NCBI RefSeq assembly: GCF_022045235.1
Contig: NW_027266267.1
Span: 17,422,001-17,486,000, forward strand
Direction of reading: 5' to 3'
Length of the DNA stretch: 64,000 bases
Origin: Haliotis cracherodii
Taxonomy: Eukaryota
Shown here: positions 18,980 to 64,000 of the stretch, one piece after another
How positions within the stretch are numbered: position 1 is the stretch's first letter
Layout: each line of letters begins with the position of its first letter
The notes under the pieces: generated by a model
Seen by the model: only the letters and a program-made list of their open reading frames with translations
The model's database searches: none
What the model was told of the DNA's origin: nothing
Translations under genes and position numbers: made by a program

Positions 18980-19894
18980 TTACTTGTTTCCACAGTCAGG
19001 ATCTGAAACCGCATCACATATATTGAAGGCCAGAAACGTAATTTCATATGTCACATTAGTATTTCAGAATGTGTCAAAAGAAACAATAATACATAGTAAA
19101 TGAATTATCAGGGCTGAGGAGGACAAACAGGCTACTGTTTGAAACTACTTCTGGTATACAATATGATATGCGAGCTATCATATTCTAAGTGGTGGTTACC
19201 TTTAGGTTGAGCGTCGCTGTTCTGGTAAGGAGATGAGCTGATGGACTCGTAAGATGCAGGAGCGGCTTCAGTCATGTCTTCGTAGGTACTTGTCTCTGCT
19301 TTGGGCTCGACTGAAAATATGACTCGTAACTCATTTCCAAAGAACAAATTGAAATGTTATAGACTCGTCTGAATGTAACACAACGTTAAATAGCATTCCT
19401 ATAAGCTGACAGTACTGAGTTTACGATAGACACCTGTTATGTATAGAGAGTGTCAAAGTATCCATCTACCATTTGTATTTTCATAAATCTTCAACTGTGT
19501 GTAATGTTGGTTTTTAGACGTCTCTGTATCCATGCTTGAGAAGTGTGCTGGACTGTTGATTTGATCTGTAACAAATCAATATGAACATGTAATAAAGGTA
19601 TCAGCGCGGAGTAGGCACAGGCATATTCGTGGCACAGGCACAATCTGTCTGACCGACAATGTTGACTTCAACCTACCCAAGGATGAATATCCTATGTTTT
19701 CCAATTCTTCAATTTCAGGATTTCTCGTGCTACAAAAGTAAGAAAAATCGTTTTTTGACAATCAATAAAGGAAAGGGCCACCTTCATATATGATTTTTGT
19801 TTCTGATTAAAAAGGACATTTACCTTATATCAAAGGACATTATTTCAAAACGTTTTATTCATTCATGAAGTGTACCTTTTTTGTGAAGTAGTTG
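18980..19894 (-). CDS. Gene D cytoplasmic exons (19, 53, 96, 111, 23 nt)
   Basis: ATTSQK-STRNPEIEELENIGYSSL-DQINSPAHFSSMDTETSKNQHYTQLKIYENTN-VEPKAETSTYEDMTEAAPASYESISSSPYQNSDAQPK-DPDCGNK*. Confidence 0.88.
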
Positions 19895-22800
19895 CTGAAA
19901 AATAGAGACTTCATATATAGTACACTGTAATGCACATATTACAAATGAGAATGTGAAATGTTAGACGTTAATGACTAAATAAAACAACATACTTCATAGA
20001 AGCAGTTACTGGTGCACTACAGTTTATGTTGTTATTGATTCTATATACATTCCCAAACTGGATGTGCTCATTCACTTTTACACACATCATTCATGTATAA
20101 TTATTGACGTCACTTTGAAAGGAAACATCCCGTCTGTAAATATCACCACACCACTTCTGATTCTACCTGTAATAATGTTACGAGGTAAAAAAGAGATTTG
20201 ACAATATACCTTTCAAAACGTTTCCAAACCTGAATCCATGCCTATAGAGGACCGTCAGAACTAGTCCCCCTATCAACAAGGTGAGAAGGAGGGTTCCTAT
20301 TATGCTTCCTGCTATTACACCTGCCATGTTATAATCGGCATTAAGCGGTTGTTGTTTTAGGGGACCTGTAGTATAAAATGAGAATCGCATGAAAGTATTG
20401 ATTATTTCATATTGTGAATATTATTTCATATATTGAAGATGTGAAGCCGCCGATCTACCGTCACTTTTTGGTGGCTGATTAGCGTTACATCATTTTTTTA
20501 AATTGTTTTGACGAATGAGTGAAACACAACAGATGTGGTGAACATTATTTTGGGGGGGATTCGTGGCAATGCTGTCAACTCGTGGCATGACCAAGGATCC
20601 CTGACTTTGGACAGACTCTATCCTCTATTCATATTTTGATGAGGGGGAATTAATCTCTCCAGAAACAGTAAAAGATACCCACAACTGACATTGAATGTCC
20701 TGACATCAGAGAGATTGTATGTCCCATACTGCCACGCCCCCAGACACTGACACTGCTGACTGTTCTGACTCCTGCTGACAGTGAAGGAGAGAGTAGATGT
20801 CCTGGTCTGACCACTGTCACTGACCAATGCTACTCCAGTCCCCGGACAGGACCACGTGATAGTAGCTAGAGGATTTCCTCCTGTCACCGAGCAGCTGATA
20901 GTCTCCCGGTCTCCTTCAAACATCAGAGTCTGAAAACTTGTGATAGAAGGAGGGACGGGTGGGGGGTCTGAAACAGGAACAACCTAGACGACTTCTATAA
21001 ATGACAATGCATGAAGTAAGAGATGCAACAGTGAGGACTGACTATATAAGACTGAACGTATCACAGTAAACCTTCTTAGTTTATCATCATATCGTAAACA
21101 GAGTCACAACATGATGTCCAGGCGTTGCAGGGAGGAAGAGTTGTGCATGAAGATTCAGTTTTGTAACTTCTAAAGGAACTGATAAGTTCCCGAATGTTCT
21201 GGATAATTGGAAAACATCTTTGAACACTCACATTTGACATCCAGTGACACAGAACCAGTGTGTGTTGCCGATGTTCTGGTGTTCCTGACCTGACATCTCA
21301 CGGCTGTCTTGTCTTTATTAGGCTTGAAGGTTAGAGTTTGGGACCACCTGGTAGAGGACCTTGACACAAACTGTGTGTTGCCACCTACAGGTGTTCCATC
21401 ACTGTAGTCCCAGATGAAGGTCGGGTTGGGATAAGCGGTGGTAGTACAGGTCAAAGTCAGGTTTCTGTTCTTGAAAACTAAACTGCTGTCTGGCATTGTG
21501 ACGTCAACCTGTTCTGGTCCGACTGGAAAACGGAATATTGAAATATATAACTACTGTGTTGCCTGATTACTGCGTAGCCCTGACAGACATATGTCAACGT
21601 CCACGGAAGCTATAGCATTGCTACATCAGACCGTATCTGAACACTAACTCATACATATCTACTACATTAAACATTCAGTGTGGCTGCCTACAGACACCAA
21701 TCTCCAATCTGGCTCTGTGAGATTTAACGTACTTTTACAAAGCCTCTCGCGTAGTTCTGATATATAGTCTACTGTCACAGATGCTCTACCATTGCTCTGA
21801 TGGACCATGTCTGATCCCCTAATAGATACATTTCTGCTAACGACGAACCTGTAGTGTAGCACTGTTAGACTTGGACTCCTTGCACCAAACCTGATAGATA
21901 CATGTTTACTTACACAAAACCTTCATTTCGGTTCTGTTAGACTGTGTACATTCGCCAAACCCCCAGTGTGTCTATGTTAGGCTATGTCTACTTACACCAA
22001 CCCTCCAGTGTGGCTCTGTTGGATTGGGTCTACTTACACAAAACCCCAAGTGTGACTTATTAGACTATGTCAACTTACACCAACCCTCCAGTGTTGCTCT
22101 GTTAGACTGTGGTGATGTCTGACCGTTGATGTTTTCAGCCTGACAGTGAATGCTCCTCCCCTGGTCACTCCTACTGACAGTGAATGTAATGGAGCTCGTT
22201 GTCTTCACCAGGACACCAGATGTCGTCTCTGTGCTGACAGTAGGAGTGGTTCCTGGTGGCAAGGTCACCCATGTCACAGAAGAAGTCGGGAAGCTGGCTG
22301 AAGTCACACAGGTCAAGGTCAGCGGTTGACCCGCCACTTGTCCTATCTCCTCATTATCAGCGTTGATGTTCGTCAGTGTCACAGAGTTTACTGGGACTGT
22401 AAGACGTGAATACATTGACATTTGGCATCAATTAGCTGTCCTTTATATATCTAAACATTGCCTATTGCCTATGATGTTTTTTTCTACCATGACATGTTGG
22501 AATCCTGAACTTGATTGGTCTGCCAGGTGTGTGGAATCTACATGCTTTTGCTGATGAGTGAATTGCCGCAAAAGGCACTATTTCTCAGAAAGCACTTCTT
22601 ACACAAAACCGACGAGTAGGAAATGTATATTTAGCACTAGTAGATTACAAACTGTGAGGTCGTGTTTGCCGGTTCACAGTGTTTTGGCATACGTGTCAGT
22701 AGAACAATATAAACTCATAAGAGTGGTGTATTTGTTTAGAACTAATTGCTACAAAGGTTGCCTCCCTCAGTTTCCCCAAATGAAACTGTATGGATAATGA

Positions 22801-25373
22801 ATACAGGGAATCTGCTAGAGGGTTGCGCTTTCCTATTTTCGAGAGAGTTAAATACAGGAAGGTATGGTTTGAATTACAAAAGCAGGATTACCATCAATGA
22901 ACTATATCAACATGGTGACAACTTCCATTCAACACAACTAAAACATTACACTTGACCAATGCAACGTAACTCATCACTTTACCTTTACATCTTTATTACG
23001 AAAAAAATAACACTGAAACTATAACAGGTTCATCTCCTAATTCTATAATTGTTATTTGTATTAAAATCGACCGTTTAATATATTGTGAATGCTAATACCG
23101 ACACAACTATGTGTGTCTCAAATCAAGGGATACTTACAAACATTGAATTCCACCCAAGTATGTGTATCATTTCCCATTTAGTATTCATTGACATGGTCAA
23201 CGTTTCCCTTGTTCAGGCATAAAAGTAAAATAGATCCCGCTTCGTAACTTCTTATTTCTGGCATCTATGTCATATTTTAAACGCACTGAATGAGAGAGAT
23301 TCAGTGCGACATACACAGATAACCATTTTGAAAAGTATTGTGAACATCCAAGAATTTTCCAAGAACTCTTTTTGCTTTCGGCGACGTCCAATTTTCTTTT
23401 TCTTACTGCTACAATACGGGCCTTGAGTCAACAACAGGTACACTTGGAGTTGATGTGCACTCACCAGGGAACTGTATTGTATTTGAAGTGACAGACTTAG
23501 TGTACGTGGGCGGGTCAAAGGAGTCGTGTTCCACACTGACAGTGAGAGACACCTGTCTGTTGTAGAGACTGGCTGTGTTTCCTGGTAGTAACAGTGAGTT
23601 GGTTGTCTGGACCTGGCCTGATGGACATGATCCCTGGGAGGAAGATGTACTGCTGGGGAGGACGCCCCTCACACTCTGTAAACATATAGGATGGNNNNNN
23701 NNNNNNNNNNNNNNNNNNNNNNNNNNNNNNNNNNNNNNNNNNNNNNNNNNNNNNNNNNNNNNNNNNNNNNNNNNNNNNNNNNNNNNNNNNNNNNNNNNNN
23801 NNNNNNNNNNNNNNNNNNNNNNNNNNNNNNNNNNNNNNNNTGTCCGTTTCACGAACGGACGGACCAATGACATGAGCTCATTTTGTCGATGCCGAGGTGT
23901 AAAGGACCATGCATCATACTAAATCATGTATGTTGATGAAATCAAATATACAAGATGGTCTACGACGTCAAGATGGACATACAGTTGCTACCTGATGGTA
24001 TCTCCATGTGATGACGGCGGCAGGGGGAGCACACGGGGTGGTCACTGTGACGGATATGTTGTTTTGTGGGGTCACGGAGGACCGGAGAGAAGTCAGTTGT
24101 GGAGAAAATGTCACAGAGCTCCAGTCCAAGACAGCTGGTAGGAAGGAATGATATAATGATAATCCTGATAGAGATCTTTCAACGTCATCAAAAGCCACAC
24201 AGCCCAACCACTCAAGAACAGATATCAATACAGGAACACACTATACGGCCTCTGTGAATAATTCACCGTAGACACCTTGCAATATAACTTTCTGAAGTTG
24301 TCAACAGTTCTGTCATCACGTGACAAACATGTCCATACTGATATTTTAATGGCGAATTATCAAATATTAACATTCTAAACTGTTTCACAACAATGTAAAT
24401 ATTTTTTAGATAGTTAACACTTGTACTATCTTCCCAGACACATGAAACTGAGCGTTCAACATGAAACTGAGCATTCAGCATAAAACTAAGAGTTAAACAT
24501 GAAATTTATGTGGGGAGGGGGAGGGGGGCAGCATCACATGCCTCGACGTTTGCCTGTATATTGACACGAACCATGAATAAGTTGAAATACTTTGGGGGTA
24601 AACAATGTAGCATTAATATTGTCTGATGTATGACCATGCAGAACATTTACTTATAATCTTGACACATATGAAAATAACACATGTATACTCTGGTTGTATT
24701 AGGGACCACAAAGCTTAGAATTATCAACCATTATGAATATGGACATGTTAGTTATCTTCAACCACTGAATTAATAGCGATTCATAAACACACTCTGCAAC
24801 CAAAATACATAAATTCATAGGGATTCATTAACACGTGCTTATGAAATAGTATGAATCATGCAATGAACTCTCTTTTCTTATGATTATGTAACAGTTTGTG
24901 TCAATTTTGTTTACATGCAAGAAATGTATTTTAATCAGTTTCTCTGTAAGTTTAGATGTGCTGTCTACTCTCGGATATAGTCGATTTACAAATACGTTTC
25001 TTTTCTTATCCACAGTTATCATGTTTTCATTTTTCAGCAAGTGATTAAAAAAAATAAAACCCGCCTCCAAACTGTGACAGCGTGATGGTATTTGACACTG
25101 TGGTACCAACAGTACATCTCCATATCCCGCTGTCTCTGGTGGAATCTGGTGATGCGATGTCAAGAGTCAGGATCCTGGATGTACTGTCCAGACTCACAGA
25201 GTATCCTGAGACAGGTGTCCGACAGGTGCCTGATGATGTGCAGGCTCCCTGGATAGAAGTATCCTTATAGAAGTAGACAATTCCACTGAGAGCCGCATCT
25301 AGTGTACAGGTGATGCTGAAACTGACACCCTCCACAGGAACACGTCTGTTGGTGGCAAGTACTGGAGCTGACT
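18980..25373 (-). CDS. Gene D: type I membrane IgSF receptor (5 Ig, TM, tyrosine-motif tail); leader exon not securely located
   Basis: Exons 25065-25373, 23992-24134, 23465-23675, 22079-22396, 21232-21522, 20683-20967, 20210-20365, 19876-19894, 19677-19729, 19470-19565, 19200-19310, 18980-19002 join in frame (about 671 aa plus leader). The Ig1 donor is non-canonical GC. Confidence 0.85.
20210..20365 (-). CDS. Gene D transmembrane exon
   Basis: CPLKQQPLNADYNMAGVIAGSIIGTLLLTLLIGGLVLTVLYRHGFRFGNVLK. Confidence 0.9.
20683..20967 (-). CDS. Gene D Ig5
   Basis: 285 nt; TISCSVTGGNPLATITWSC...QCQC. Confidence 0.9.
21232..21522 (-). CDS. Gene D Ig4
   Basis: 291 nt; LTLTCTTTAYPNPTFIW...VRCQVRN. Confidence 0.9.
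21680..22110. repeat. About 41-bp degenerate tandem repeat built from the gene D Ig3 exon 3' end and donor
   Basis: ACTTACAC at 21908, 21990, 22032 and 22073. Confidence 0.8.
22079..22396 (-). CDS. Gene D Ig3
   Basis: 318 nt; LTLTCVTSASFPTSSVTW...IHCQAEN; paralog of B Ig3. Confidence 0.9.
23465..24134 (-). CDS. Gene D Ig2-like domain, split across two exons (23992-24134, 23465-23675) by a phase-0 intron
   Basis: Phase 1-0 and phase 0-1 exons with canonical sites; ISVTVTTPCAPPAAVITW...GSCPSGQVQTTNSL...VSLTVSVEH. Confidence 0.72.
25065..25373 (-). CDS. Gene D Ig1 (V-like, extra Cys pair, WRC)
   Basis: FSITCTL...GACTSSGTC...LTLDI...DSGIWRCTV; donor AG|GCGGGT. Confidence 0.83.
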
Positions 25374-27299
25374 CTGAAACGGTATGACTTGGAAGTTGCA
25401 TGTTTCTTATGTTGTTAGTAAGTGAGTGAGTGGAGTACGGAGTAGTGCTGCTATGAACAGTGTTTAAATTATGTGTGTTTGTTTGATGTTGGAGGAAAGT
25501 GATGCATGTCTTATACGTTTACCACTTTTGTGAGGCCCACGAACACGGGTATTGTGCTTGCGAAGGGCGAATTTATAATTCGAACTAAAAATTATAGGTT
25601 AACGTCACGCCTGATATAACGGTCGCACTTCTACACAACACATTGTGACCACTGTGCCACACATGCCCGTCATATGTTGTTGTATAAATAACCAATGTTG
25701 ACTGCTTTAAATATATACCACAAGCGCTACCATGTCCATGTTCAGCACATTCATATTTCAGAAATTGATGTTCATTGTTTTAGATTTTAAAAAGATTACA
25801 TCAACGACTATGCCAAAGTATCTGTCTGCATCTTGTTTTCTTTTTTTGCATTAAATAATCAACTATTGTCAAAATAGGGCGTAATATACAGTTCTGAAGA
25901 TCAGGTTTTTATATCACACTATTTGAATATCAGGATGTGAGCATGAATCGGGTTTCATGCCGCTCTGAATATCATTTCAGTTACAAATCTGGGGGTCAGC
26001 CTACTTTAGAGCAGGTATTGAGCTGATCTGTGAATCCTAATCGGGGCAGGAAAGAGAGCAGGAAACTCCACACTTTTATGCTGATATTTGTGTGCCAAAG
26101 GCCAACATGTCTATGACTAGAAATGTGGTATGACAAGCCAAATCGGTCAATGTTACCTTGTCCGTATTCACCAGGCGACTTATTCACGAAGCTGCCCAGC
26201 TGAGACGGATTTTCAAGCTGTCTTAAACCTTACGCAACGTTATCTCACTTGTGACAACACTTTTATCTACGACAGTGAGCTCTTTTGTGACGGCGGTGAA
26301 ATAAGCTGGGCGTTCCAAATGACGACAAGATAATGCCGAAGGAAAACGAAAATGTGACAAAACATACATGCTTGATTACGTAGCAACAATCGCAAAATTG
26401 CGACGCGTCGCAACACCGTTGTTGTTGCAATATTGGGTCTCACAGTTTCCGACGTTCTTTTCATTCGGTTTAAATTCTTTTGCTACGGAAACTATCTTTA
26501 AACAATACACGTGCAATGCTTAACCTTAGAAAGAACAATTCCATTCAACAATTTTCAACTCAAATAACAGCTTGTCTCAATGCCACTCAGTAAAATTAGA
26601 CAACTGATATTGTTTACGATATTACTTCGGACTGCAGCTTGCAATAATAATGCTATCCCGGGGCTAGTAAACAATCACAAGGACAAGCCTTTGGACACTA
26701 TGACATTTGATACAATATTCGTATAGATACTGATTTTATTTAACGTTGAAAAAGGGTATTTGTGTATGTCTTTTGAGCATCTTAAAAAAAAAATATATCT
26801 TCAAGAAGGTTCGCGATTTGAAAATCGTTGATGCCTATTTCATCCTTGAAAGTTTCACAAACTAAATAAAAAAAGAACTTTGTAAATATCCTGTATTCAT
26901 GTATATTTCATTGTGATAGATTCAAGAGTCCTTGTGAATACCTTTAAGCTTAATCTCCTGTAAACTGTCACAATGTGGGATCTCACATTTAGCAGAAGGG
27001 AAACTATCTGCCAGGACAAGATATACGTGCATTATATATGTAGGGTCAAATGTCAAAAACTGATAGATTGCATGAAATATTATTGAACAGGCACCTATTT
27101 GCTCGATGTGAAAAGGAAGTCTTGAACATATACTGCCCAAAGTTTGCTAAGGATCATCACTTTAAAAGGTAATACGTACAGTGGTGTGCATTTGTTGTAA
27201 TAGCCATAAGTAATGTTGCGTGAAGACACGTTTAATGAACAAATGCCCCTTGCCATGGGCCACACAATGCCACAAAACAACATTTTGCCACAAAAGCAA

Positions 27300-28137
27300 A
27301 AAATTAAGTATCTCATTAAAACTGAAACGTTAAAAAATCACAAAAACAAATAATTCTATTGTCGAAAAAACAACACTCTCCGGAGGGCTTATGTGATTCA
27401 CGTGATGCGATCACAGCCTGGCACCGTCGTCTCATGCTCCCAATAAGTGTCTGGATGGTTGCCAAGGGAAGATTGACCCAGTAAACACGACGATCTGTGA
27501 AGTCTAGACAGTATCCAGAATTCATCCGTGAACAGTACTGGTTTGTCCAGTAAACGAGGTCTTGATCAGCCCAATACAAACGTGCCTGCTTGTGATTTCG
27601 GGCTAGTGGGGTGCGAATGCAGATGGTGTCTTGCTGCAATCGGGAGAAACCTGTCTTCCTGCTGTGTGGTGGAACGCTGTCGTCCACGTGCATGTCACTG
27701 GGTAGCTGATACAAACATGTGGTTTCGATTCCATGCCCTGCTGATCACACGTTGGCTGACACCAAAGACGTTTGCAACATGACGTTGCGTTGACCAAGTT
27801 TTAAGCATGCCAATGCATGTGCCTAATTCGTCGGTCGTCAAACGACGTCCTTGACATTGAGGGATACATGTGCATTCAGTTGTTGCATTCAGTCCTAGTA
27901 ACAAATGTTGTTGTGCTCTCTGGTAATGGTGTACAACGATTATGTCATTATACATCCAAACACAGGTGTTCAAGCACCTCGTGCACAGTGAATGCATGCC
28001 TCTGTCCTTTCCTCATGAAAGTGCAGTCCTATAGGGGTTACCCAATCATTGTGTACCAGAATATTTCAATCTGTATTTGTTGGATTTAATTTTGATATCA
28101 TTTAAACTTGATCCTATGCATACTTTGAGTAGTATAT
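27300..28137 (-). mobile_element. Highly degenerate, internally deleted Tc1-like transposon
   Basis: Fragments IGML..QRHVANVFGVSQ..ISR (HTH) and LIGSMRRRCQAVI; terminus ...GAGTAGTATA. Confidence 0.72.
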
Positions 28138-31270: not shown

Positions 31271-32422
31271 TCAGTAGCGTGTATGGCCACCATGTGCGTT
31301 GACAACTGCCACACAACGCCTCCGCATGGACCTTTTGATACTTGTGAACACATGACTGGGAAGACGACGCCATTGATGCTGCAAAATGATGCAAAGATCT
31401 TGCAAATTCTGTGGTTGGTTCTGGAGAGTACGCAGACTTCTGACAAGAGCATCCCAGTCGTGTTCGAAGGGATTGAGGTCGGGAGACCTTGACAGTCAGT
31501 CAGTGACGTTGACTCCCGCATTCTGAAGGAAATTCCTTGTCAAAATTGCTGTGTGGGGTCTTGCATTGTCGCGTTGGAAGATCAAACCTGGTCCATGTGC
31601 TGCCATAAAAGGCAGAAGTTCTGGCGCCAGTATCTGGTCGCGGTTAGCAGCAGCTTTGAGGTTGCCACAGATGACAAGAAGCCTGGAACGTGCATTGCCA
31701 CAGAAAGCACCCCACACGATGACACTTCCGCCTCGAAATCTGTCAACTTCCTGTACACAACACTAGGCGTAACGTTCATGACGGCGCCTCCACACCCTTG
31801 CCCTACCATCAGCAAATCGAAGATTAAATCGGGATTCATCACTGAAGACGACTTGATTTCCATTCCTCTGAGTCCATCGTAAGTGTCGATGTGCCCAATA
31901 TTGACGTTGACGTCTGTGTAATTGAGTCAGAATCGGCCCGCAGTATGGCCGTCGTGCTTGAAGGTGTGCAGTTCTCAGATGGTTTCGAACAGTTTGCGCA
32001 CTCAGTCTACCCCTAAACAGTTCAATTCTGGTTGATGTAGCCGTCAAAAATCGGTTACGGAGGTGACGTAAGACAATCTGACGATCCTCTGCATGTGACG
32101 TCACACGTGATCGACCAGGCCGAGGGCGATCAGCGGTTGTACCCGTTTGCTGTAGACGCGTCTGTAAATCATAAACAGTCCGTCGACTACAACCCATCGT
32201 CCTTGCGACTTCAGCTACGGACGTTCCCGCCTGCAACATGCCGATGGCACGTTCACGTTGCACATTTGAAAGGCGTGGCATGACCAATGGAAACACTTTT
32301 GCCACTATAGTGCTGTGCACATGATTTTGATCGATTCACCTGCACAAAAACGGGCCCACAATGATAACTGGTCAAAATATTAAAATTTAAGGATTGTGAA
32401 GTTTTTAATTTGGTTCAGTATA
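31271..32422 (-). mobile_element. Tc1 (DD34E) transposon with a full-length 337-codon transposase frame (31271-32281) carrying two nonsense codons
   Basis: MPRLS..RERAIGML, FSDESRF, DNARPH-34-E (SPDLNPFE), GGHTRY*; a single reading frame throughout. Confidence 0.93.
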
Positions 32423-32569
32423 TACACCAAAGAGTAGTGCCATTATGATTGGTAAATATAAGCAGTTGAGGGATGAGCGAGGGTGGTGAGATCTCTTGTC
32501 TGACATGATTCTTTGTGTGACTTTGTCAATAACCTGAATTTCTTCTTTCGTTCACCAGACAACACCAAA

Positions 32570-34747: not shown

Positions 34748-37700
34748 TCATATATTTCCATAGTCAGCATCTGGAAAAGAACAGAAAACATTGTATAACG
34801 CAGGTAGTTAATAAGGAGATACACATAATGTGTAACCATGACAATATTAAACGCTTTGTTTTTATATTGATATTGTGTGAAACGGCACTGGTTGCATGCA
34901 ATGGTTTGAGTGAGTTGTTGATCTGAATTATGGAAACCCCAATAATATCGCTTAAACAAAATATGGCGCTATATTTGCACAAACATATTCATTTCATATC
35001 GTAATACCTCACTCGCATGGTACACATGGTCCCTCTAAAGAAAACACTGCTCGTCACTAGTGTGAGTGAATAAGTGATTGAGTGAGTGAGTTGGGTTTAA
35101 CACCCCTTTATCAGTATCCCAGTTATATAAGGGCGTGTAAGCTTGATGTGGGAGGAAAGCCCGAGGCGATGCAGGTCTCAGACGTTTACCACTTTGGTGA
35201 AACATTTCTATATATAATAGCTTCCAGGGTCATGGTGCCGTCAAATCAGCTGTTTCAATTGAAAGGTGATTATAGTAATTTGTGGGGCGGTCTGGTAGCC
35301 TTGTTGTTAAAGTGTTCCCTCATCACGCCGAAGACCCGGGTTCAATTTCCAAAGCCCATTTCTGGTGTCCCCCGCCGTAATATTGCTGGAACATTGCTAA
35401 AATCGGCGTAAAACCATACTCACTCACTCACTGTAATAATTTGATACCGTGATTGACCGATCAGAATCGAGTATTTCACATTCATGGTAGAAATTATAAT
35501 TGTGTGCGTTTATGGAGGTGTAAGAACCGTTGTGCATGCCTTACACAAATGAAATACCTATACTGTGCATACATCCACTGACTCAATTTATACGTTGTGC
35601 TTATCAGCTTTTATATTATACCTTCATAAACGCAAACAAAATATTGAATAAAAAACAACAAAACCCCTTTCATATTCATGACACGTCTCTGCTATAATCC
35701 ATTCTACGATTCCGACTGTATCATGTGCAATTCTTATCAATAAATAAGTCAATAAAAATACATTCTCAGACTGCTAATCAATTTAAAAGCATAAACAACT
35801 GTAGACAACGATTAATAGCATAGTTCAGTGCAATATAACGATATAATATAACATTAATCACTATTTTTGATTGGAACAGGGAGGATATCAATTCAAATTA
35901 GTATACAATGAGTGAGTGAGTGAGTGAGTGAGTGAGTGAGTATGGTTTTACGCCACTATTAGCATTATTCAGCAATATCACCTTCAAGGGACTTCACACA
36001 TTATTACCATGTAGGGAATCGAACCCGAACCTTCGACGTGACGAGCGCACGTTTTAACCACTTGACAACACCACCGCCCCTTTGAATAGATTATACAACA
36101 TACAAGCACAGTTTGAGAATGATGTAAGATTAAAGTTAGTCACAGCGCTACGAGATTCAAAGATTAATTACCACGAGGTTGACCGCCACTGTCCTGGTAC
36201 GGAGATGCGTTGATGGATTCATAGGTCACAGGGGGAGTCTCTGCCATGCCTTCAAAGGTACTCGTATCTGCTGGAGCATCTTCTAGAAGATATATGATTG
36301 TTTATATCATATATATATATATTCTTTTAAAACGTAAGGGATAAGAAAATTCAAATCTTAATTGCAAGTTTTATAACAAAGATAGTTGTTGACAACAAGC
36401 ATCCTATGCAAGACCGTTCATGTCTTTAAAACATTGTTCCCAAACACATCAGGTGCCGCACGCAGTGGTCCCACACCCGTGCGTAGCGTGCCATTCCTGA
36501 TTATGACACTTTCAGAGAAGGTGGAATAATCTCTGTTCACCATTATGTCTGTCAATCTGATTGATTTTGCTTATCTTACAGTTGTGATTTACTTGATTTC
36601 TTTCATTGTTTGTGTATGATATAGCGACGAGGCATCTGCAACACACGGTGCGGCCACGGGCTATTGGCATGCTGGAAACTGGCAGAAAAGATCGACCCCA
36701 TTCAGGGAGTCCCTGGTCAACGACAAGAGTACAGGATCGACTGTTCCGCTACCAGGCTCTACAAAATCGACCTCAAACGGGAAATTAGATTGGTGCAAAC
36801 TTTCACCAGGCAACTAGGGACGAGTTACGGGTCAGACGAATAGATGCTCGTCTAGATGCTCCATGCTCCATGCTCGGCGGCCACGTGTGGTGCCGCCCCT
36901 TACAAATCGTCATATTGCCAACAGTTGTCAATGGTGTACACAATGTCGAAACTGGGGTAATCATCGCTGGTCATGTGGCATGTTTTCGTCAAGTTCATGT
37001 CAACATGAGACCTCATGGGGAATTTGGCGGTGGATCGGTTCTGGTGTGGGGGGTGGAATCACTTTTACTGACCGAACCCCACCACACATTGTGCAAGGAA
37101 GGGTCACTGCACAGTACTATCTGGACACCATACTGACACCCTTTGTTGTCCCGTTTGCAAGGCGTGTGGGTCGACGATTTGTCTTTCAGGATGACAACTC
37201 CCGTGTTCGACGCGCACGAATCGTCAGTGTTCACCTTCAGCAGCACAACATCTAGCAAAGAGTCCAGACCTTTCCCCCATTGAAAACATCTAGGACATTA
37301 TAGGGACATGTGCGCGTCAACATTATAGGCCGCCAACCACGTTGGCTGAACTTGGTCAGGTCCTGCATGAGGAGTGGGACAGACTCCCCAAAATCGCCAT
37401 AAGGACATTTATACGCAGTATGCCTCGTCGAGTGAATGAGTGTTTGACAAATCGTGGCCGTATTACGCACTACTGATCCAAAACCGCAACTTTGAAATTT
37501 CCCATCTCACCCCTATCGTTTTTCTAGATTGTTGGTTAGCAGTCATAGCATCGACTGTCATACATCAATGTAATATGTTCACAATTCCCTCATTGTAATG
37601 ATACAACTAATACTAGAAACTGATACCTCTTACAACTTTGGAATCTGCAGGTTGTTTCCGAGTATTCTTTACTTTCTTCTCTACTTCTCTTCTGAAGAGT

Positions 37701-52763: not shown

Positions 52764-53655
52764 TTACTTGTTCCCATAGTCAGGATCTGAAACTGCATCT
52801 CATGGAATGAAGACCCGGAAACTAATTTCAAAGTTGTCAAACGATGACAGGGTAAACGTGTTGTACACCAGGACACAAGAGGGTGGGATTTTGAAACTTA
52901 AATTACTTCTGGTATACAATATATAATGCAAGATTTTAATTCTTTTCAGGGGTATAAATATTCTGAATAATGGTTACCTCGAGATTGACCGCCGCTATTC
53001 TGATATGGAGATGCGTTGATAGACTCTGGAGGAGCTTCTGTCATGTCTTCGTAGGTACTGGGCTCGACTGAAAATGTGATTCGTAACACATTTGCAAAGA
53101 ACAAATTCAAATGTTACACATCCTTTTAAACGTAACACAAAGATGAATAGCACACCGATGATCTTTCAGTACCTTCACTGAGTTTATCGATTGAGAACTG
53201 CTATAGTATATAGAACATCAAAGTATCCATCTACCGTTTGTATTTTCATAAATCTTCAACTGTGTGTAATGTTGTTTTTCCGATGCCTCTTTATCGCCTG
53301 GGTACTCAGCTGGACTGTTGACGTGATCTGGAACGAATCCATATGAACATACAATAACGGTGTTAGGGCGAAGTAGAAACAGTCATATTTGTGAACAAAA
53401 CAATCTATCTGACGAACATTGCTGACTTCAACTTACCCAAGGATGAATATCCTATGTTTTCCATTTCTTCTATTTCGGTATTCCTTGTGCTACAAATGTA
53501 AAGTAAGGTCCGTGTATGGCATTTTATAATGGATAGGAACATCTTCAATGTATGATTTGTTTTGTGATTTTAGAGGACATCTACCTTATTACAAAATAAA
53601 TTATTTTAAAACGTATTATTCATACATTTAGTCTACCTTTTTTGTGAAGCAGTTC
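52764..53655 (-). CDS. Gene B cytoplasmic exons (19, 53, 93, 90, 23 nt)
   Basis: GTASQK-STRNTEIEEMENIGYSSL-DHVNSPAEYPGDKEASEKQHYTQLKIYENTN-VEPSTYEDMTEAPPESINASPYQNSGGQSR-DPDYGNK*. Confidence 0.88.
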
Positions 53656-56600
53656 CTGCAAAGAAGAGAATGCATTACATAGTACCCTGTAATACACACA
53701 TTAAACATGTTGCAAAGGGATAATATGATATGTGAAACCTTAATGACTTAATACAAGAAACATCGACAATTTGTGCTATTATTAATTCCATATACATTCC
53801 CGAACTGTATGTTCTCATTCTGGGTCAGTGATGATTTTGATTCGTACGTAACTTTGACGCATATTATTCATGTATCTACTGAAGGCACACTGAAATGAAA
53901 TATCGCCACATCATGTTTTCACTCAACTTGCAATACTGTTGAAAGGTAAACATGAGATTTAACAACATACCTTTCATGATGTTTCCAAACCTGAACCCCT
54001 TCCTATAGAGGACAATAAGAACTAGTCCTTCAATCAGCAAGGTAAGAAGAAGGGTTCCTATCGTACTTCCTGCTATTACACCTGTGATGTTATATTCGGC
54101 ATTGAGTGGTTGCTGTTTCTTTGGACCTGCAGTATAAAATGAGTATTTTATGAAATTAGTATTGACTTCTCTTTTACTGAACACAGATTTTTGTATTTTG
54201 ATCATGTGATGAGCTTGATAAAGGTGTCATTTACATCAAACAGGCTTTATACTTCAAACTTTCTGAATGAGGGGGAGTTACCAATTGTACCTATCAATCC
54301 CTCCAGAAACAGATAAAGGTACTCACAGCTGACATTGAATGCCCTGACATCAGAGAGGTTGTATCCTCCATACAGCCATGCCCCCTGACACTGACACTGC
54401 TGACTGTTCTGACTCCTGCTGACAATGAAGGAGAGAGTAGATGTCCTGGTCTGACCACTGTCACTGACCGATGCTGATCCAGTGCCGGGACAGGACCACG
54501 TGATAGTAGCTAGAGGATTTCCTCCTGTCACCGTGCAGCTGATTGTCTCTGGGTCTCCTTCAAACATTAGAGTCTGAAATTTTGTGATGGAAGGAGGGGC
54601 CGGCGGTGGGTCTGAAAAAGGAACAGCCATGATAGTAACTATACACAGAAATGCATAAAGCAGTGGAGAACATGACACTATCTGGAACATTTTACAAACT
54701 GGCTTAGTTAGTGTTATCCACAACAAAAAGAAGTTATTTCATCAAACAGTGTCCACTATACATGAAAGAGTCGGTGGTTATATTATCTTTATATATCACT
54801 TTGCTCGCTCCCTATGTTTACAATGATATACAACCTTCACATGTGCTTCAAATGAAAATCTGAACTGCTCTTAACAAACTGGGCACACTAATGAACTCTC
54901 ACACTTGACATCCAGTGATGCAGAACCAGTCTCGGTTGCTTTGGTGTTTCTGACTCTACACCTCACAGCGGTCTTGTCTTTATTTGGCCTGAAGGTGAGG
55001 GTCTGTGACCACCATGTAGAAGATCCTGTCACAGACCCCGTGGTGCCCCCTACAGGTGTTCCATCAATGTAGTCCCAGGTGAAGGTCAGGTTGGGATAAG
55101 CGGTGACAGTACAGGTCAAGGTCAGGTTTCTGTTCTCTAAGGCTACAGTGTTGTCTGGCTTTGTCACATCCACCTGCTCTGGTCCGATTGTAATACAGAA
55201 CAGTTACCTTTGACATCAATGTTATCTTAACCTCTCACTGCATTTGTAGTACTGCTTTGACAACATGTCATATCCGATATAGTATGATTTGAACCTACAT
55301 GAACACCTACGTCAATTACTATTCATCGTAGTTCAGTCTCATGAAGGAGTTGATCTCGCTGTCTAACTGACGAAAATACTCACTTTTCACCTATGATATT
55401 TTGTCTTGAGTGCCATATTACTGGATTGACTAAATGACTCCCTGACTGCAAACAACTGTATCCTCCCAGTGCGACAATAAGGCAATGGCATGTATAGAAC
55501 AGTAGTTATTGACTGATTGACTGATATCACATGAATGACATACGAATGTGTGACAACAGAGAGTTACTCACACCACACTCCCACCCGGGCACTGTCAGAC
55601 TGTACTGGGGAGGGGGTGTGGATGTTGGTGGCTCTACAGTAGACTTTGTGGCCCAGGTCACTCCTGACAGGGATAATGGTCACGGTACTTGTTGTCTGGA
55701 CAACACCTGATTGGGATGTGTGACCATTGGATATCCCACTTGCCAACGGAACACTGTTCTTGAACCACGTGACAGTAGCAGCAGGGTAACTGGAAGAGGT
55801 CACACAGGTCAAGGTCAAGGGTTGACCCTCAGCAGCTCCTACTTCCTGGTTGGCGGATGTGATGTTTGTGAGAGACACGCTGCTGACAGCAACTGCATAG
55901 AAATTGATTTAATCACAACTAGTGTATATATCTGTCATATTCAATAACGTAATGTCGAAGGCATAAAGGTAACTATCTACAATATTTATGATGTGGAGGG
56001 AACATTGCTATTATATTACTTACTGTCAGGATAGGAATACGTGGAGTTGACACTTGTCTGTGTGTTGGATGCCTGGCAGTAGTACAGGGAGTTCCTACTG
56101 GTGCCTGTCAGCTGGTAGTTGATGGTGGCTGTCCAGCCAGTGTCTCCCTCCACTGCTACTGGGCTGGTGGCCACACTCATCCCGTCTCTGTACAGCGTCA
56201 TGGACGGCGGTGGATTGGAGACAGCAGCACAGGATATAGACATTGTAGTTCTTGTTATGGTAACATTGCTCAGAGGAACTGAAATAATAACATAGTTTTA
56301 TAAAGTGTTGGTATCTATTTAAGACGACGGTGGGTTGGAGACTAGTGCATGTGAGACTGATTTCGGGAACTGAAATATCAACATAGTTTTATGAAGTATT
56401 GTAATGAGTTGGAGAAACAGGTGATATATGTTGTAGGTCTAGTCATGGTAACAATGTTCCGGGAACTGACATAATAACATTATCTTTGGTGTATCTATGT
56501 AGGATGGTGGGGCAAAACTGCAATATCAGTGGTTAATATTGGGAAAGGGAGGTCAGTCTAATTTCAAACGGGAGCTATCTCCGTTGTTTTCGTATTTGCG

Positions 56601-59600
56601 AGCAATGGCGTCACCGACGCTGTACTTTGTTGGTCCAGCTATTAAATGCCCAGCTTATCCCTACGGTAAAACGTATTCTTAATTAAATGTTTAAATGCAT
56701 TATATTTATGTTTCCATCCGTACACCTTCTGAGATTGGTTTAGTGCTGATAACCATTTTCCAAAATGTGGGCCCACATCTTTTCCGTCATCTTTGGTGAT
56801 CGAAACAAGTGGGCCCACATTTGTATTTCGCCTAGCTTCGTTAGGTTGTTTCGTTAGTTCTGATAATCAATCCCTAAATGTGGGCAGACGTTCTTTCGTC
56901 ATATTGCTTGCAACAGGAGGGACCACATTTATTAATCGCGAAATTCTACTTAAATATTGATAATCATGGGCCTACATTGTTCCCGTCATATATGGTGATC
57001 GAAACAAGTGGGCCAATATTTGAATATCGCCTAGTGGGTAGACGTTCTTCCGTCATAGTGCAACAGGAGGGACAACATTTAAAAATCGCTCAGCTTTATT
57101 AGCTTGGCTTACTTATAACCATTTTTAAAAAATGTGGGCCCACATTGTTCCCGTCTTATAGTGATCGAAACAGGTGGGCCCACATTTGTAAATCGCTGGG
57201 TTTCATTGGGTTGACAAAGTCATTTCAACTAGTGGGCTCACATTTGTCATTACTTTTCATGGGTATGTGACATTTTTTATTATTCATATTTTGTAGTGGA
57301 AAATGAAGGAAAGAGTAGATGTCCTGGTCTAACCTGGGACGAAATTATTTCCCCTAACGTCGGAAGGCACAACAAAGGGAGGTAACCTGGTTTCGTAATG
57401 GGTATATAAGTACAAGCGGAAAGTTGAAACTTCATTCTCAGGTGCGGTGCAGTCGAGGCTGGCTATATCAAACATGTTCGGTTATCTATGCTGCCGATTG
57501 AAGTACACATCGGTTGAATCTAAATTTGTTATTATTTGTGTGTGAAGTAGATGCAGCTGTCCATATGATGATCAGGATGTTATGCGTTGCTTGCAAGTTG
57601 TGCTGGCGAGCCATGATAATACGTTGTGAGATGGATCAGTGTCCATAGTTAAAATCTGGAACAGTTGGTTGCGAGAGTATGGATTTGGGATATACTCTGA
57701 TGAGTATTCGCTGACGAGCCATAAGAATACGTGATAAGGCGTCGATGCCTGTGTATATGTATACGTTGCAAATATGAAGCATAGAATATATTCATGTAAA
57801 TTACAGTTGGTTGGTTGATGGTCATGATGCTGGTGATGCAGCCGATGTTCATGATAATGTGAATACTTGTTGAAGAATAAACTGCGGTCAGTCAGTGCAT
57901 CGTACAGTATCCCAAAATGTTGTAGTTGTGTATTTTGTTGTGTTAAGGGGGAGAAGGAGGAGAAGTTCGTAATGCGGGTTCGTTTACATAGACATATTCT
58001 CAACAACAAGTGCGTTTAGTTTCCAATATGGGCCCACCTATGATTTTTCGATTAGGCAAACGGAGTTAGCTCCCTTCTCGAACCACCGATAATGCGGTTT
58101 CACCGATGGTGGTGATGGTCACCTGACATACTAACCTGATACATCCATTTGTAAATGGTTACTCCCTGCATACTGATAGTCATACTGTGGTTTAAGCAAA
58201 CGTCCACAAAACATAGCTACCTGATACATGCATTTGTATCGGGTTACTCTAAACATAATGAAAGACATACTGTGGTTTAAGCAAACATGAACCCACTTAA
58301 CTGATACATCCATTTGTATCAGGTTACTCTCTGCATATTGAAAGTCATACTGTAGTTTAAGCAAACATCCACAGAACATACTTACCTAATACATTCATTT
58401 GTATCGGGTTACTCTATACATTCTGAAATTCATACTGTGGTTTAAGCAAACATCCACAGAACATAGCTACCTGATACATCCATTTGTATCGCGTTACTCT
58501 ATACATACGGAAAGTCATACTGTGCTTTAAGCAAACATTCACAGAACATAGCTACCTGATACATCCATTTGTATCGCGTTACTCTGTACATACGGAAAGT
58601 CATACTGTGGTTTAAGCAAACATCCGCAGAACATACTTACCTAATACTTCCATTTGTATCGGGTTACTCTATGCATACTGAAAGTCATACTGTGGTTTAA
58701 GCCAACATCCACAGAACACGGTTACTGATACATCCATTTGTATCGGGTGACTCTATACATACTGAAAGTCATACTGTGGTTTAAGCAAACATCCGCAGAA
58801 CATAGCTACCTGATACATCCATTTGTATAAGGTTACTCTATACATACTGAAAGTCATACTGTGGTTTAAGCCAACATCCACAGAACACGGTTACTGATAC
58901 ATCCATTTGTATCGGGTGACTCTATACATACTGAAAGTCATACTGTGGTTTAAGCAAACATCCGCAGAACATAGCTACCTGATACATCCATTTGTATAAG
59001 GTTACTCTATACATACGGAAAGTCATACTGTGGTTTAAGCAAACATCCCCAGAAGACGGTTACTGATACATCCGTTTGTATCGGGTTACTCTATACATAC
59101 TGAAAGTCATACTGTGGTTTAAGCAAACATACACAGAACATACTTACATAATACATCCATGTGTATCGGGTTACTCACTGCATATTGATAGTCATACTGT
59201 GGTTAAAGCAAACATCCACAGAACATACTTACCTAATGCATCCATTTGTATCGGGTTACTCTATACATACTGAAAGTCATACCGAAGTTTAAACAAACAT
59301 CAATAGAACATAGTTACCTAGCACACTTATGTTTAGTTGGTTGCTTTGTCTGCCACCAAACTGATAATCACATCTCCAGCTGAGTGTGTCTCTGCCGTAT
59401 ACGGCGTTGTTGATGGTGAGGGTGTAGTTGGTGGAGCTGGGGCAGGAGGTGGTGTAATCAGTTTGGACAGATGGGGAGGTGGAGCTGCAGCTACCCTGGC
59501 TATTTCTGTAGAATGTAGTTCCATTCTGCCACTGTATAGCTGTATGTGAAGCTTCTCCTGTGTAACACATCAGAGTACAGCTTCCCCCTTCCAGCACAGA

Positions 59601-60448
59601 ACCTCCACATGATGACGTCAGCTGATAGTTCTGGGCAGTAACTGAAACCGTAGTAAATATGTTGTGAGATGTTACATTGAGGTTCACAGAACGATGTCTA
59701 ACCCGATGTTCCGAGATATTGACACAAGCATTATGCTTGTAAGCTACTGGAAAAGAACAACTTGCGAACAAAATCAGAATGGACTATTATAGGCAAAAAT
59801 ATCTGCACTTTTATCTCTTACTACACGTCTGATGTCTCATTCATACACGGTTTGGGGCAACATGCGGTTCAGCTGTCTCTGACACCCCAATTTGCTTTGT
59901 AGAGTTGCATCCCTTTGCCGTGCCAGAAACATACGATCGTGGGTTCGAATTCCAGTTCACCCTCATTATGTCTCTCACACCTGCGCTCGTGGCTTTCACC
60001 AAAATGAATGCGTAAGACATACATTCTGGCTTACCTCCTTCATCAAGCTGACACGCTGATCTGTAAGTGAAATACTGTTATTAAACGTCTGAGACCTGCA
60101 TCACTTCAGGCTTTCCTCCCACATTAAGGTGACACGCCGTGATATGACTGGAACACTGTTAAAAGCGGCGTTAAACCCAACCCACTCACTCACTCACTTT
60201 ATTATCGACATGCAGAGGTAGATGTACATAACCACTGACATATACGTGCAATCTACTTCCTGGTTCTATTTTCAACCACTGTATGTGTGGGAACTGAGTG
60301 TGAGATTCATTTCGTTACCCCTGATGCAATAATATTAACACACATAAACCACAAGCAGTCAGATAGTGTACTTACCCACGTGTTTGTGACATATGTCCAC
60401 CAAGAGAGCTCCAACTGTGAGGATGAGACGGGTGTACAGCATGGCCAT
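52764..60448 (-). CDS. Gene B: type I membrane IgSF receptor (signal, 5 Ig, TM, tyrosine-motif tail), about 658 aa; exon 5 acceptor mutated
   Basis: Exons 60376-60448, 59318-59641, 56024-56278, 55572-55892, 54903-55187, 54327-54611, 53971-54126, 53637-53655, 53437-53489, 53235-53327, 52978-53067, 52764-52786 sum to 1977 nt, an open frame ending in TAA. All junctions are GT-AG except the exon 5 acceptor (AA). Confidence 0.88.
53971..54126 (-). CDS. Gene B transmembrane exon
   Basis: CPKKQQPLNAEYNITGVIAGSTIGTLLLTLLIEGLVLIVLYRKGFRFGNIMK; hydrophobic helix followed by a basic stop-transfer segment. Confidence 0.9.
54327..54611 (-). CDS. Gene B Ig5 (membrane-proximal)
   Basis: 285 nt; TISCTVTGGNPLATITWSC...QCQC; nearly identical to gene D Ig5. 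Confidence 0.9.
54903..55187 (-). CDS. Gene B Ig4 (open frame, but the acceptor reads TTACAA rather than ..CAG)
   Basis: 285 nt; LTLTCTVTAYPN...FTW...VRCRVRN. The paralogous exon in gene D (21232-21522) has the canonical acceptor. Confidence 0.75.
55572..55892 (-). CDS. Gene B Ig3 (C2/CD80-like)
   Basis: 321 nt phase 1-1; LTLTCVTSSSYPAATVTWFK...VYCRATN. Confidence 0.9.
56024..56278 (-). CDS. Gene B Ig2 (short C2-like)
   Basis: 255 nt phase 1-1 exon; SISCAAVSNPPP...LYYCQASN. Confidence 0.85.
56570..58074. mobile_element. Probable non-autonomous DNA element with 16-bp TIRs and internal GTGGGCCCAC palindrome repeats (gene B intron 2)
   Basis: GGGAGCTATCTCCGTT ... AACGGAGTTAGCTCCC (15/16 inverted match); no clear TSD. 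Confidence 0.55.
58130..59320. repeat. 84-85-bp tandem repeat, about 14 copies, abutting the gene B Ig1 donor
   Basis: CATCCATTTGTATCGGGTTACTCTATACATACTGAAAGTCATACTGTGGTTTAAGCAAACATCCACAGAACATAGCTACCTGATA units; includes a 169-bp higher-order duplication. Confidence 0.95.
59318..59641 (-). CDS. Gene B Ig1 (V-like, 6 Cys, WRC F-strand)
   Basis: TTTCAG acceptor, GTAAC donor, 324 nt; CTLMC...IQW...YTLTI...DTLSWRC. Confidence 0.88.
60376..60448 (-). CDS. Gene B exon 1, signal peptide MAMLYTRLILTVGALLVDICHKHV
   Basis: ATG, hydrophobic core, phase-1 donor G|GTAAGT. Confidence 0.8.
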
Positions 60449-60509
60449 GTCGGCAGTGTGTGAAACTAGGTCGTGTGTAGGAAATAGATACTGGCGTTGA
60501 ACTACAGTC

Positions 60510-60524
60510 TATAAATACACCCGG
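60510..60524 (-). promoter_or_regulatory. Candidate TATA-like core promoter of gene B (CGGGTGTATTTATA)
   Basis: About 60 nt upstream of the ATG, with CCAGT (Inr-like) about 25 nt downstream. The same 14-mer occurs upstream of gene C at 49082-49095. Confidence 0.5.
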
Positions 60525-62994: not shown

Positions 62995-63231
62995 TTGTTG
63001 TTGGATTGTTGTTTAACGCCGCACTCAGCAATATTCAAGTTATATACCGACGGTCTGTAAATAATCTAGACTGGACTAGACAATCCAGTGATGAAATCAT
63101 GAGCACCGATCTAACCAACTCAGCGAGCATGACCACCCGATCCCGTTAGACGCTTCTTATGACAAACGTAGTCGCCTTTTACAGCAGGCACGGGTTGCTG
63201 AAGACTTAATCTACCCCGGATATTCACGGGT
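62995..63231 (-). mobile_element. SINE-like family 2 copy
   Basis: Matches 45275-45546. Confidence 0.72.
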
Positions 63232-63327
63232 CTAACTATGTTTTGACTCAAAGGAAATGAATGTCATATGTTGCACGTGTTCCTTGGTCTGTTACTGCAT
63301 CTGATATCATGAATTCTTCCTTCTTCG

Positions 63328-64000
63328 TTACTTATTGTCATGGTCAGTACCTGAAAAGTATAGAACTACATGTAAGTAAACACAGATTATATGACAGGTT
63401 TTATATCACTCACAATAACATGACATGCTAAACGTGTCACATTAGGATTGAAAAGAAGACATATGCTTCGGTTTAATGCTTCTGTACATGCCCACAGTTT
63501 GCCCATGGCAATGACATACGATTCCAACCAGCAAGAGTGTTTCATGTTTTGGTTACCTTGAAAATGTGCTCCAGTGTTCTGGTATGGAGATGGTTTGATG
63601 GACTCATAGGTCACAGGGGGAGTCTCTGTGATGCCTTCATAGGTGCTTGCAACAGCTGCAGCATCCGCTGAAGATATAATTCATTACGTATTACAACAAC
63701 AAATCCGAATCACAACTCCCTTCTTCTAACTAGCACTTCAATATTACCTACACTGGAATGCTTAAACTTAAACAGTATTGGGGAAAAATGCAAAATCTAT
63801 ATCAACCTTTTGTATTCTCATAAATCTTCAACTGTGAATACGGTTGTTTTTCTGATTCCTCCAAATTTGAATACTGGACTGGTCCATTTATTTGATCTGA
63901 AACAAAACAATGTGAAAATATTGTATTGATTTTAGTGCAAAACAGTTCCATATATAATGGTAATTTCAACAAAAGGGAAACACCCAGTACCTTGTACATA
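63328..64000 (-). CDS. Gene A (partial): 3' cytoplasmic-tail exons of an IgSF receptor paralog with two ITAM-spaced tyrosine pairs
   Basis: Exons 63807-63896 (DQINGPVQYSNLEESEKQPYSQLKIYENTK), 63557-63667 (ADAAAVASTYEGITETPPVTYESIKPSPYQNTGAHFQ) and 63328-63350 (GTDHDNK*), all AG/GT bounded with phase-1 junctions and homologous to the tails of B-D. A possible end of the preceding exon lies at 63984-64000 (YKVL, positionally equivalent to YSSL). The rest of the gene is beyond the window. Confidence 0.88.

Follow-up and report, generated by a model that had tools for sequence, protein, structure and literature searches.

The stretch of Haliotis cracherodii DNA considered here (the window) comprises 64,000 nucleotides, C4:17422001-17486000 of the 1.18-Gb assembly, and harbors four paralogous units, denoted A to D, that were delineated by self-comparison of its open frames. 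They are members of the immunoglobulin superfamily (IgSF) and type I membrane proteins: ectodomain exons of B and D match the Pfam families Ig_3, C2-set_2, ig and I-set, one exon of C matches fn3, the transmembrane (TM) exon encodes a hydrophobic stretch followed by YRKGF, and the RefSeq full-length models agree with the architecture of a type I IgSF receptor. Gene B, which extends on the minus strand from a leader exon at 60377-60448 down to 52764, is identical (100%, exon by exon) to P0018, a RefSeq model of the same species named "V-set and immunoglobulin domain-containing protein 10-like." The cytoplasmic tails of these receptors, with eight tyrosines in about 105 residues, and the conservation of those tyrosines across a large family of paralogs are the subject of this work.

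Four receptor genes and their tail exons

The genes share a cassette of six exons, namely the TM exon, a micro-exon of 19 bases (e0) and four short cytoplasmic exons (e1 to e4), of which e2 and e3 are symmetric (phase 1-1). The tail exons of A to D are all on the minus strand, open, and bounded by canonical AG/GT sites; they span the interval from 18980, the stop of the last exon of D, to 63896, the first base of e2 of A (Table 1), and every one of them lies at least 3 kb from both assembly gaps of the window. In the RefSeq models, the last exon uses an acceptor located 6 bases further upstream (52792 in B), which adds Val-Ser.

The reading frame of e1, the 53-base exon that carries the IGYSSL site, depends on the micro-exon. 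The TM exon ends in phase 1, and e1 is entered in phase 2: the strong donor found family-wide at the end of the TM exon, AAAG/GTAT, provides one base where e1 needs two, and splicing the two exons directly to each other generates a stop in B and D. Alignment of the intron between them in 14 diverse paralogs revealed the micro-exon, which is kept in 14 of 14, has the consensus GAACTGCWTCACRAAAAAG and good splice sites, and shifts the phase from 1 to 2, so that IGYSSL is read in frame. RefSeq models from four species of Haliotis contain it as well, within segments such as GTASQKS or ATTSQKS. The frame is further backed by the fact that the codon differences between C and D at IGYSSL are all in third position and silent. 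A weaker donor of the TM exon, CAG/GTTYGG, 20 bases upstream of the main one, was considered as another way to restore the frame and dropped, because its GT is absent from the A-like paralogs and the micro-exon accounts for the phase. Within the TM helix, B and C have a Glu residue (LLIEGL and LFIEGI, respectively) at a position occupied by Gly in D and A (LLIGGL), and the family as a whole is divided between the two forms.

Reconstruction of the tails exon by exon recovered, at the same places, every tail motif quoted in the initial annotation of this DNA, which had been made from the letters alone. Pair 1 of the tail tyrosines has ITAM (immunoreceptor tyrosine-based activation motif) spacing in A and C and not in B and D, and at the level of sequence consensus A has an ITAM in both pairs and C in pair 1, B and D having none. 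Pair 2 is complete in A and D and starts with Phe in C, and in B its YEDM is kept and the second tyrosine has been removed by a deletion of three codons, which is common to the paralog L010 and to the H. rufescens protein P0016. IGYSSL, which fits the consensus IxYxxL of an immunoreceptor tyrosine-based inhibition motif (ITIM), is shared by B, C and D, and YENT (YxN) by all four genes; the terminal exon reads HDNK, YGNK, YGNI and CGNK in A, B, C and D, respectively. To this list the reconstruction adds one more invariant tyrosine, that of SPYQN (SPYQD in C), and shows that the IGYSSL-type exon of A reads RGYSSL. The first site of pair 1, Phe in D, is Cys in its closest paralogs, L005 and L011.

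Table 1. Exons of the six-exon cassette in genes A to D, assembly gaps of the window, and candidate SH2 and phosphatase exons elsewhere in the genome. Positions are those of the window unless a contig is named; positions of A beyond 64000 are window equivalents.
Gene or feature	Element	Position	Strand	Phase	Content or remark
A	TM exon	64567-64728	minus		outside window
A	micro-exon e0	64219-64237	minus		outside window
A	e1	64002-64054	minus		RGYSSL; begins 2 bases outside window
A	e2	63807-63896	minus	1 to 1	YSNL-x7-YSQL, YENT
A	e3	63557-63667	minus		YEGI-x7-YESI, SPYQN
A	e4 (terminal)	63328-63350	minus		..DHDNK, stop
B	TM exon	53971-54126	minus	1 to 1	Glu in helix; ends ..YRKGFRFGNIMK
B	micro-exon e0	53637-53655	minus	1 to 2	19 bases; GTASQKS in P0018
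B	e1	53437-53489	minus	2 to 1	53 bases; ..ENIGYSSL
B	e2	53235-53327	minus		YPGD, YTQL, YENT
B	e3	52978-53067	minus		YEDM; second Tyr deleted; SPYQN
B	e4 (terminal)	52764-52786	minus		DPDYGNK, stop
C	TM exon	38974-39123	minus
C	micro-exon e0	38517-38535	minus
C	e1	38033-38085	minus		..DNIGYSSL
C	e2	37854-37949	minus		YTSL-x9-YSQL, YENT
C	e3	36172-36282	minus		FEGM, VTYESI, SPYQD
C	e4 (terminal)	34748-34770	minus		DADYGNI, stop
D	TM exon	20210-20365	minus		Gly in place of Glu of B and C
D	micro-exon e0	19876-19894	minus
D	e1	19677-19729	minus		..ENIGYSSL
D	e2	19470-19565	minus		FSSM, YTQL, YENT
D	e3	19200-19310	minus		YEDM-x7-YESI, SPYQN
D	e4 (terminal)	18980-19002	minus		DPDCGNK, stop
Assembly gap		23695-23840			inside second ectodomain exon of D; outside every tail
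Assembly gap		46742-46879			upstream of first Ig (V-like) exon of C (46139-46504); outside every tail
SHP-like locus	SH2 exon	C15:9905875-9906051	minus		position only
SHP-like locus	SH2 exon	C15:9908176-9908301	minus		position only
SHP-like locus	Y_phosphatase exon	C15:9894498-9894632	minus		position only

Conservation and range of the tail

Searches were run exon by exon or with the database proteins P0008 and P0018. In the genome, the e2 profile found 61 places and the e3 profile 56, nearly all within 10.0-17.9 Mb of contig C4 and a few on C38. The family comprises at least 55 loci on one chromosome. In total, 65 loci were retrieved and their TM, e0, e1, e2, e3 and e4 exons annotated. The 44 paralogs with e1, e2 and e3, which include a few probable pseudogenes (L015, L021), were used for a codon alignment and a maximum-likelihood tree, and the changes in each column were counted by parsimony.

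Five of the tyrosines, those of GYSSL, YxQL, YENT, YESI and SPYQN, are clearly under strong purifying selection. The replacement and silent changes amount to 1 and 0 for GYSSL, 1 and 3 for Y(S/T)QL, 0 and 3 for YENT, 2 and 3 for YESI, and 0 and 3 for SPYQN, i.e., 4 and 12 for this core as a whole. Selection is indicated by the excess of silent over replacement changes and by the use of both TAT and TAC codons at these sites. The first tyrosine of pair 1, at which the tyrosine losses are concentrated (10 replacement and 2 silent changes), is the most variable column (tied for the top of 82); it is a tyrosine in 26 of the 44 members and has been replaced by F, C, H, N, D or T, or deleted. As an unconstrained tyrosine codon is expected to undergo about 4-6 replacements for each silent change, by our own estimate, this site looks neutral, and the terminal-exon site, which is H, N, Y, C or F, with Tyr only in B/C/D-type genes, also evolves at about the neutral rate. 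The tyrosine of YE(G/D)(M/I) has undergone 4 replacement changes and 1 silent change. Selection has therefore not kept both tyrosines of pair 1, as would be expected of an ITAM, since the second is near-invariant and the first the most variable. The RefSeq proteins of the other three Haliotis species give the same picture of conservation, with the same core.

It had been proposed initially that each paralog keeps its own subset of tail tyrosines as a signaling code, a claim for which a rate of tyrosine loss above the background rate of substitution was to be the criterion. The seven tyrosine columns together have undergone 18 replacement changes (mean 2.57 per column) and 15 silent ones, compared with 282 (mean 3.76) and 183 for the 75 other columns of the tail (Mann-Whitney p = 0.12), so that the losses of tyrosines, taken as a class, do not exceed those of other residues, and the claim fails by that criterion. 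A different subset per gene does describe A to D, but it does not extend to the family: in the 44 members, 11 patterns of presence and absence at the seven sites were found, with all seven tyrosines in 18 members and only the first one of pair 1 missing in another 14, which together make 32 of 44. Similarly, YEDM (YxxM) was said to occur only in B and D, which is correct among the four genes and does not hold more widely, as YE(D/G)M is present in 29 of the 44. Among the other motifs, the ITIM consensus at GYSSL (IGYSSL) occurs in 15 members, A and 24 others having RGYSSL; the ITAM consensus is fitted by pair 1 in 19 members and by pair 2 in 6; (V/L/I/S)xYE(S/A)(I/L/V) is found in 31, in the form V(T/S)YESI in A and C; and YxN is almost universal both at the end of e2 (YEN or YQN, 43 of 44) and at SPYQN (42 of 44, with YQD in C).

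These contrasts run along two clades of the tree. The B/D-like clade is characterized by IGYSSL, YEDM, NTN and a pair 1 that is of YxxM type or lost, and the A-like clade by RGYSSL, YSNL-x7-YSQL, NTK and YEG(M/I). The division into ITIM-type and ITAM-type tails, as defined by these consensus motifs, is a real split and a feature of subfamilies. As the contrast follows the two clades, it represents one or two evolutionary events and not to independent tuning gene by gene. Three members combine the ITIM consensus with the ITAM consensus in pair 1, 12 have the former only, 16 the latter only, and 13 neither; this apparent anticorrelation was rejected as independent evidence, since the skew follows the same two clades.

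The tyrosine content of a tail can also change by splicing or exon duplication, as indicated by the skipping of tail exons and the duplication of e3 in gene models. The RefSeq isoforms P0039 and P0011, both from a single gene of H. rubra, differ in the skipping of e2, the H. rufescens model P0006 joins the TM exon directly to e3, and the H. cracherodii model P0029 has two e3 exons. Other cases of tail-exon skipping or e3 duplication involve the loci L021, L024 and L064. Moreover, the terminal exon is cut off by an in-frame stop that lies close to or at the end of e3 in L001, L015, L030, L034, L036, L038, L041, L042, L043 and L045, the stop of L015 falling before SPYQN, and L021 has three e3-like copies and a GHSSF site.

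The family has so far been found only in Haliotis, in four species, judging from profile and protein searches. Against 1.84 billion representative proteins, the e3 profile gave 13 matches, and the nine that were looked up were all from Haliotis; likewise, the 30 tail homologues of P0008 were all from H. cracherodii, H. rufescens, H. rubra or H. asinina. In Pfam, the tail has no counterpart, the precomputed lists for the P0008 homologues containing Ig and fn3 only, and a search of the ESM Atlas with the tail of B returned nothing at 0.9 or above. The automatic names of the homologues are scattered (turtle-like, hemicentin-2-like, CD22-like, nephrin-like, NCAM1-like, CEACAM-like), and neither the e3 profile nor the P0008 homologues revealed a homology to CD22/Siglec, nephrin, turtle, NCAM or CEACAM proteins that reaches the cytoplasmic tail. 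A search of the literature found no paper on this abalone receptor family.

Readings of the tail and state of the ectodomains

The preferred reading, to which a probability of roughly 0.55 is assigned, is that of a tail for multi-phosphotyrosine docking, in which a core of five tyrosines is fixed and the periphery weakly constrained. Clustering of the receptors would lead a Src-type kinase to phosphorylate the tail, on which SH2-domain proteins would then dock. The core comprises GYSSL, Y(S/T)QL, YENT, (V/A)xYESI and SPYQN, which selection has maintained in almost all paralogs and across four species, and the variable part consists of the first tyrosine of pair 1, that of YE(G/D)(M/I) and that of the terminal exon. 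By consensus, the two YxN sites might bind an adaptor of the Grb2/Drk type and the (I/V)xYxx(L/I) sites an SHP-type phosphatase or a Src/Csk-type SH2 domain; YxxM might recruit p85, and the ITAM-like pair, where present, a Syk-type kinase. The tyrosine differences among A to D would therefore be mostly subfamily differences and drift at weakly constrained sites, superimposed on a constant core, and not a code set separately for each gene. Phosphorylation of the tails, their SH2 partners and an activating or inhibitory output are inferred only, from the motifs.

A potential partner is suggested by a locus on C15 (9.894-9.908 Mb), where two SH2 exons and a tyrosine-phosphatase exon lie on one strand within 14 kb, an arrangement that fits a gene of the SHP/Csw type. 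Elsewhere, C34:66.05-66.36 Mb contains a run of nearly identical matches to tyrosine-phosphatase exons, and six tandem intact open frames for kinase domains are found at C12:28406371-28415054, with a spacing of about 1.6 kb.

Several points weigh against a docking tail of this kind. The motif assignments are consensus matches to the SH2 preferences of vertebrate proteins, and YxxL, YxxI and YxxM are compatible with the YxxPhi sorting signal, too. No Syk-type gene was confirmed: several tandem pairs of SH2 exons are found, e.g., at C1:59.019/59.023 Mb and C2:35.90 Mb, and no adjoining kinase exon scored. A search for sequencing runs containing the stretch listed no RNA run, and the best four matching runs consist of short DNA contigs with introns and exons, devoid of splice joints. 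As for the evolutionary part, the tree rests on about 435 bases, possibly subject to gene conversion, and the ratio of 10:2 at the first site of pair 1 corresponds to 12 events, a number that does not separate neutrality from repeated selected loss.

The foremost alternative, which is the initial interpretation, is that small deletions and the replacement of Y by F, C or H have been selected in each paralog to set the balance between ITAM-Syk, ITIM-SHP and PI3K/Grb2 signaling, which would turn the cluster into one of paired receptors. In agreement with it, the ITAM spacing is canonical in both pairs of A, in pair 1 of C, and in pair 1 of 19 of the 44 members; A, with its two ITAM-like pairs, does not have the ITIM consensus at RGYSSL; only 3 of the 15 members with IxYxxL at GYSSL also have an ITAM in pair 1, and 16 have the latter only. 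In addition, the loss of the YESI tyrosine of B recurs, in open frames, in a paralog and in an H. rufescens protein, and ITAM-Syk signaling operates in mollusks, as shown by the oyster receptor CgIgR (PMC6994640). Nevertheless, the absence of an excess of tyrosine losses refutes the general claim by its own criterion, the main variable site appears unconstrained (10:2) and in the D subclade it changed again, from Cys to Phe, once the tyrosine was lost, the ITIM/ITAM contrast can be traced to one or two events, and two tyrosine patterns cover 32 of the 44 members. Furthermore, the same five-tyrosine core is present in every member, with (V)xYESI among its sites in 31 of the 44, which implies that no member would be purely activating or purely inhibitory, and no member has the short tail and basic TM residue typical of activating partners. 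Selection paralog by paralog is therefore considered unlikely. The interpretation of the tail differences as signaling tuning is partly supported: A to D differ in the way described, and a signaling code in their tails is possible, but that tyrosine changes would tune activating versus inhibitory output is a hypothesis.

YxxPhi is the consensus for adaptor binding, and the YxxL, YxxI and YxxM sites could act as sorting signals for clathrin adaptors, in which case the tail would mainly govern how an adhesion or uptake receptor is endocytosed or delivered to lysosomes, rather than SH2 signaling. GYSSL, YSNL, Y(S/T)QL, YE(G/D)(M/I) and YESI all match this consensus, and the hydrophobic residue at +3 of the first site of pair 1 survives the loss of its tyrosine (HCSSM, QHSHV, QNSRL). 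On the other hand, YENT and SPYQN, two of the sites with the strictest conservation, carry Thr or Ser at +3 and fit YxN instead of YxxPhi, a single tail with five or more sorting signals would be out of the ordinary, and most of the tyrosines are preceded by acidic residues, as in the substrates of tyrosine kinases. A sorting function is considered improbable as the main role of the tail.

Slightly less probable still is that the differences among A to D are functionless, representing ordinary divergence in a fast-duplicating cluster with numerous copies in decay or unexpressed, D perhaps among them: the ten members with stops or truncations in e3, the aberrant L021, the interruption of the second ectodomain exon of D at an assembly gap with a stop in the flanking frame, and the fact that none of the 30 listed tail homologues of P0008 matches A, C or D would speak for it, but the tail exons of A to D are open with intact splice sites, B corresponds to a full RefSeq model, the ratio of 4:12 at the core tyrosines denotes ongoing purifying selection on most copies, and the same core is retained in four species.

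The interruption in D concerns its second ectodomain exon (23466-24240, minus strand). Residues 109-166 of P0008 align with 24147-23974 and residues 160-230 with 23678-23466, so that the two halves of the exon overlap by about seven residues, and the upstream open frame stops just before the gap. Gene D may be broken or mis-assembled at this gap. The membrane-distal V-like exons of D (25048-25518) and B (59292-59783), on the minus strand, have the Cys...Trp...Cys look of Ig domains; no Pfam match to them was found at E <= 0.001. In C, the neighboring Ig exons at 43963-44268 and 44488-44772 (minus strand) share about 70% protein identity, with a 37-residue stretch at 97-100%, and this pair looks like a recent internal exon duplication. 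Remnants of Tc1/mariner-type transposases are present between D and C (31274-32335, minus strand; HTH_Tnp_Tc3_2 and other HTH matches) and at 27319-28012 and 40645-41707, and the ab initio protein P0007 wrongly joins the tail of D to transposase-like sequence. Lastly, long tandem repeat arrays occupy 5017-7400 and 58126-59320, the latter in an intron of gene B; their units are about 80-85 bases apart and 80-88% identical.

Related receptors and significance

Among mollusks, the closest parallel is CgIgR of the oyster Crassostrea gigas, a type I IgSF receptor whose tail ITAM recruits Syk and activates ERK in hemocytes (PMC6994640; reviewed in PMC11999971). Like the abalone proteins, it is a type I receptor of a mollusk that combines several Ig domains with one TM helix and a tail ITAM. 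However, CgIgR is encoded by one gene and has just one ITAM, of unrelated motif sequence, whereas the abalone tail has up to eight tyrosines and is exon-modular, and it is found at at least 55 loci, with no homologue detected outside Haliotis.

In vertebrates, CD22 and the other Siglecs, PECAM-1, FCRL and CEACAM1 combine an Ig ectodomain, one TM segment and several short phase-1 tail exons and are encoded in tandem gene clusters, and the tails of such co-receptors mix ITIM, ITAM-like and Grb2-type tyrosines in one chain (e.g., YENV in CD22). The abalone family resembles them in its architecture, its short phase-1 tail exons, its mixed tyrosine motifs and its clustering. Names such as 'B-cell receptor CD22-like' and 'CEACAM5-like,' given to some members by Gnomon, reflect similarity of Ig domains only, and the vertebrate co-receptors have no tail homology to the abalone family, the e3 profile being restricted to Haliotis. 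The resemblance is convergent at best.

Nephrin, Kirre, SYG-2 and Turtle have Ig repeats followed by one fn3 domain, a TM segment and a tyrosine-rich tail, whose phosphorylation by Src-family kinases docks SH2 adaptors. Ig domains, fn3 (in an exon of C), TM segment and tyrosine-rich tail are all found in the abalone family, and Gnomon has named some of its members 'nephrin-like,' 'protein turtle-like' or 'syg-2-like.' In contrast, molecules of the nephrin type are single-copy and widely conserved and have longer ectodomains, whereas the abalone family is a lineage-specific tandem expansion in which at least two ectodomain designs are mounted on one tail cassette.

The leukocyte receptor complex of vertebrates (KIR/LILR) and the Alr complex of Hydractinia consist of dozens of tandem IgSF genes in a single chromosomal segment, with a variable membrane-distal domain and with tails that differ in ITIM or ITAM content, features in which the abalone family resembles them. 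In the paired receptors of the former, the classical activating partners have a short tail and, in the TM segment, a basic residue by which an ITAM adaptor is recruited. Every abalone member, in contrast, is long-tailed, and the variation in its TM segment is between Glu and Gly. The teleost NILT (PMC3022915) and LITR families are further examples of clustered IgSF receptors with tails differing in ITIM or ITAM content.

A bolder proposal is that of a lineage-specific abalone receptor complex of about 55 genes, comparable to the vertebrate leukocyte receptor complex, with ITIM/PI3K-type and ITAM-type tails diversified by tyrosine loss, exon skipping and e3 duplication. It is doubtful at present, and, if true, it would provide a mollusk with a combinatorial signaling repertoire for the recognition of non-self or pathogens. 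Ig receptor clusters whose tails bear tyrosine motifs are characteristic of innate recognition in vertebrates, and work on mollusks has so far dealt with single examples only, such as the oyster CgIgR. A large, genus-restricted abalone family with a sharply defined tyrosine core and two tail subfamilies is apparently new to the literature. The tyrosine differences among A to D should not be taken as a code without functional data, and the family offers a testable entry into how surface recognition may be wired to SH2 signaling in gastropods, with relevance to the biology of abalone disease.

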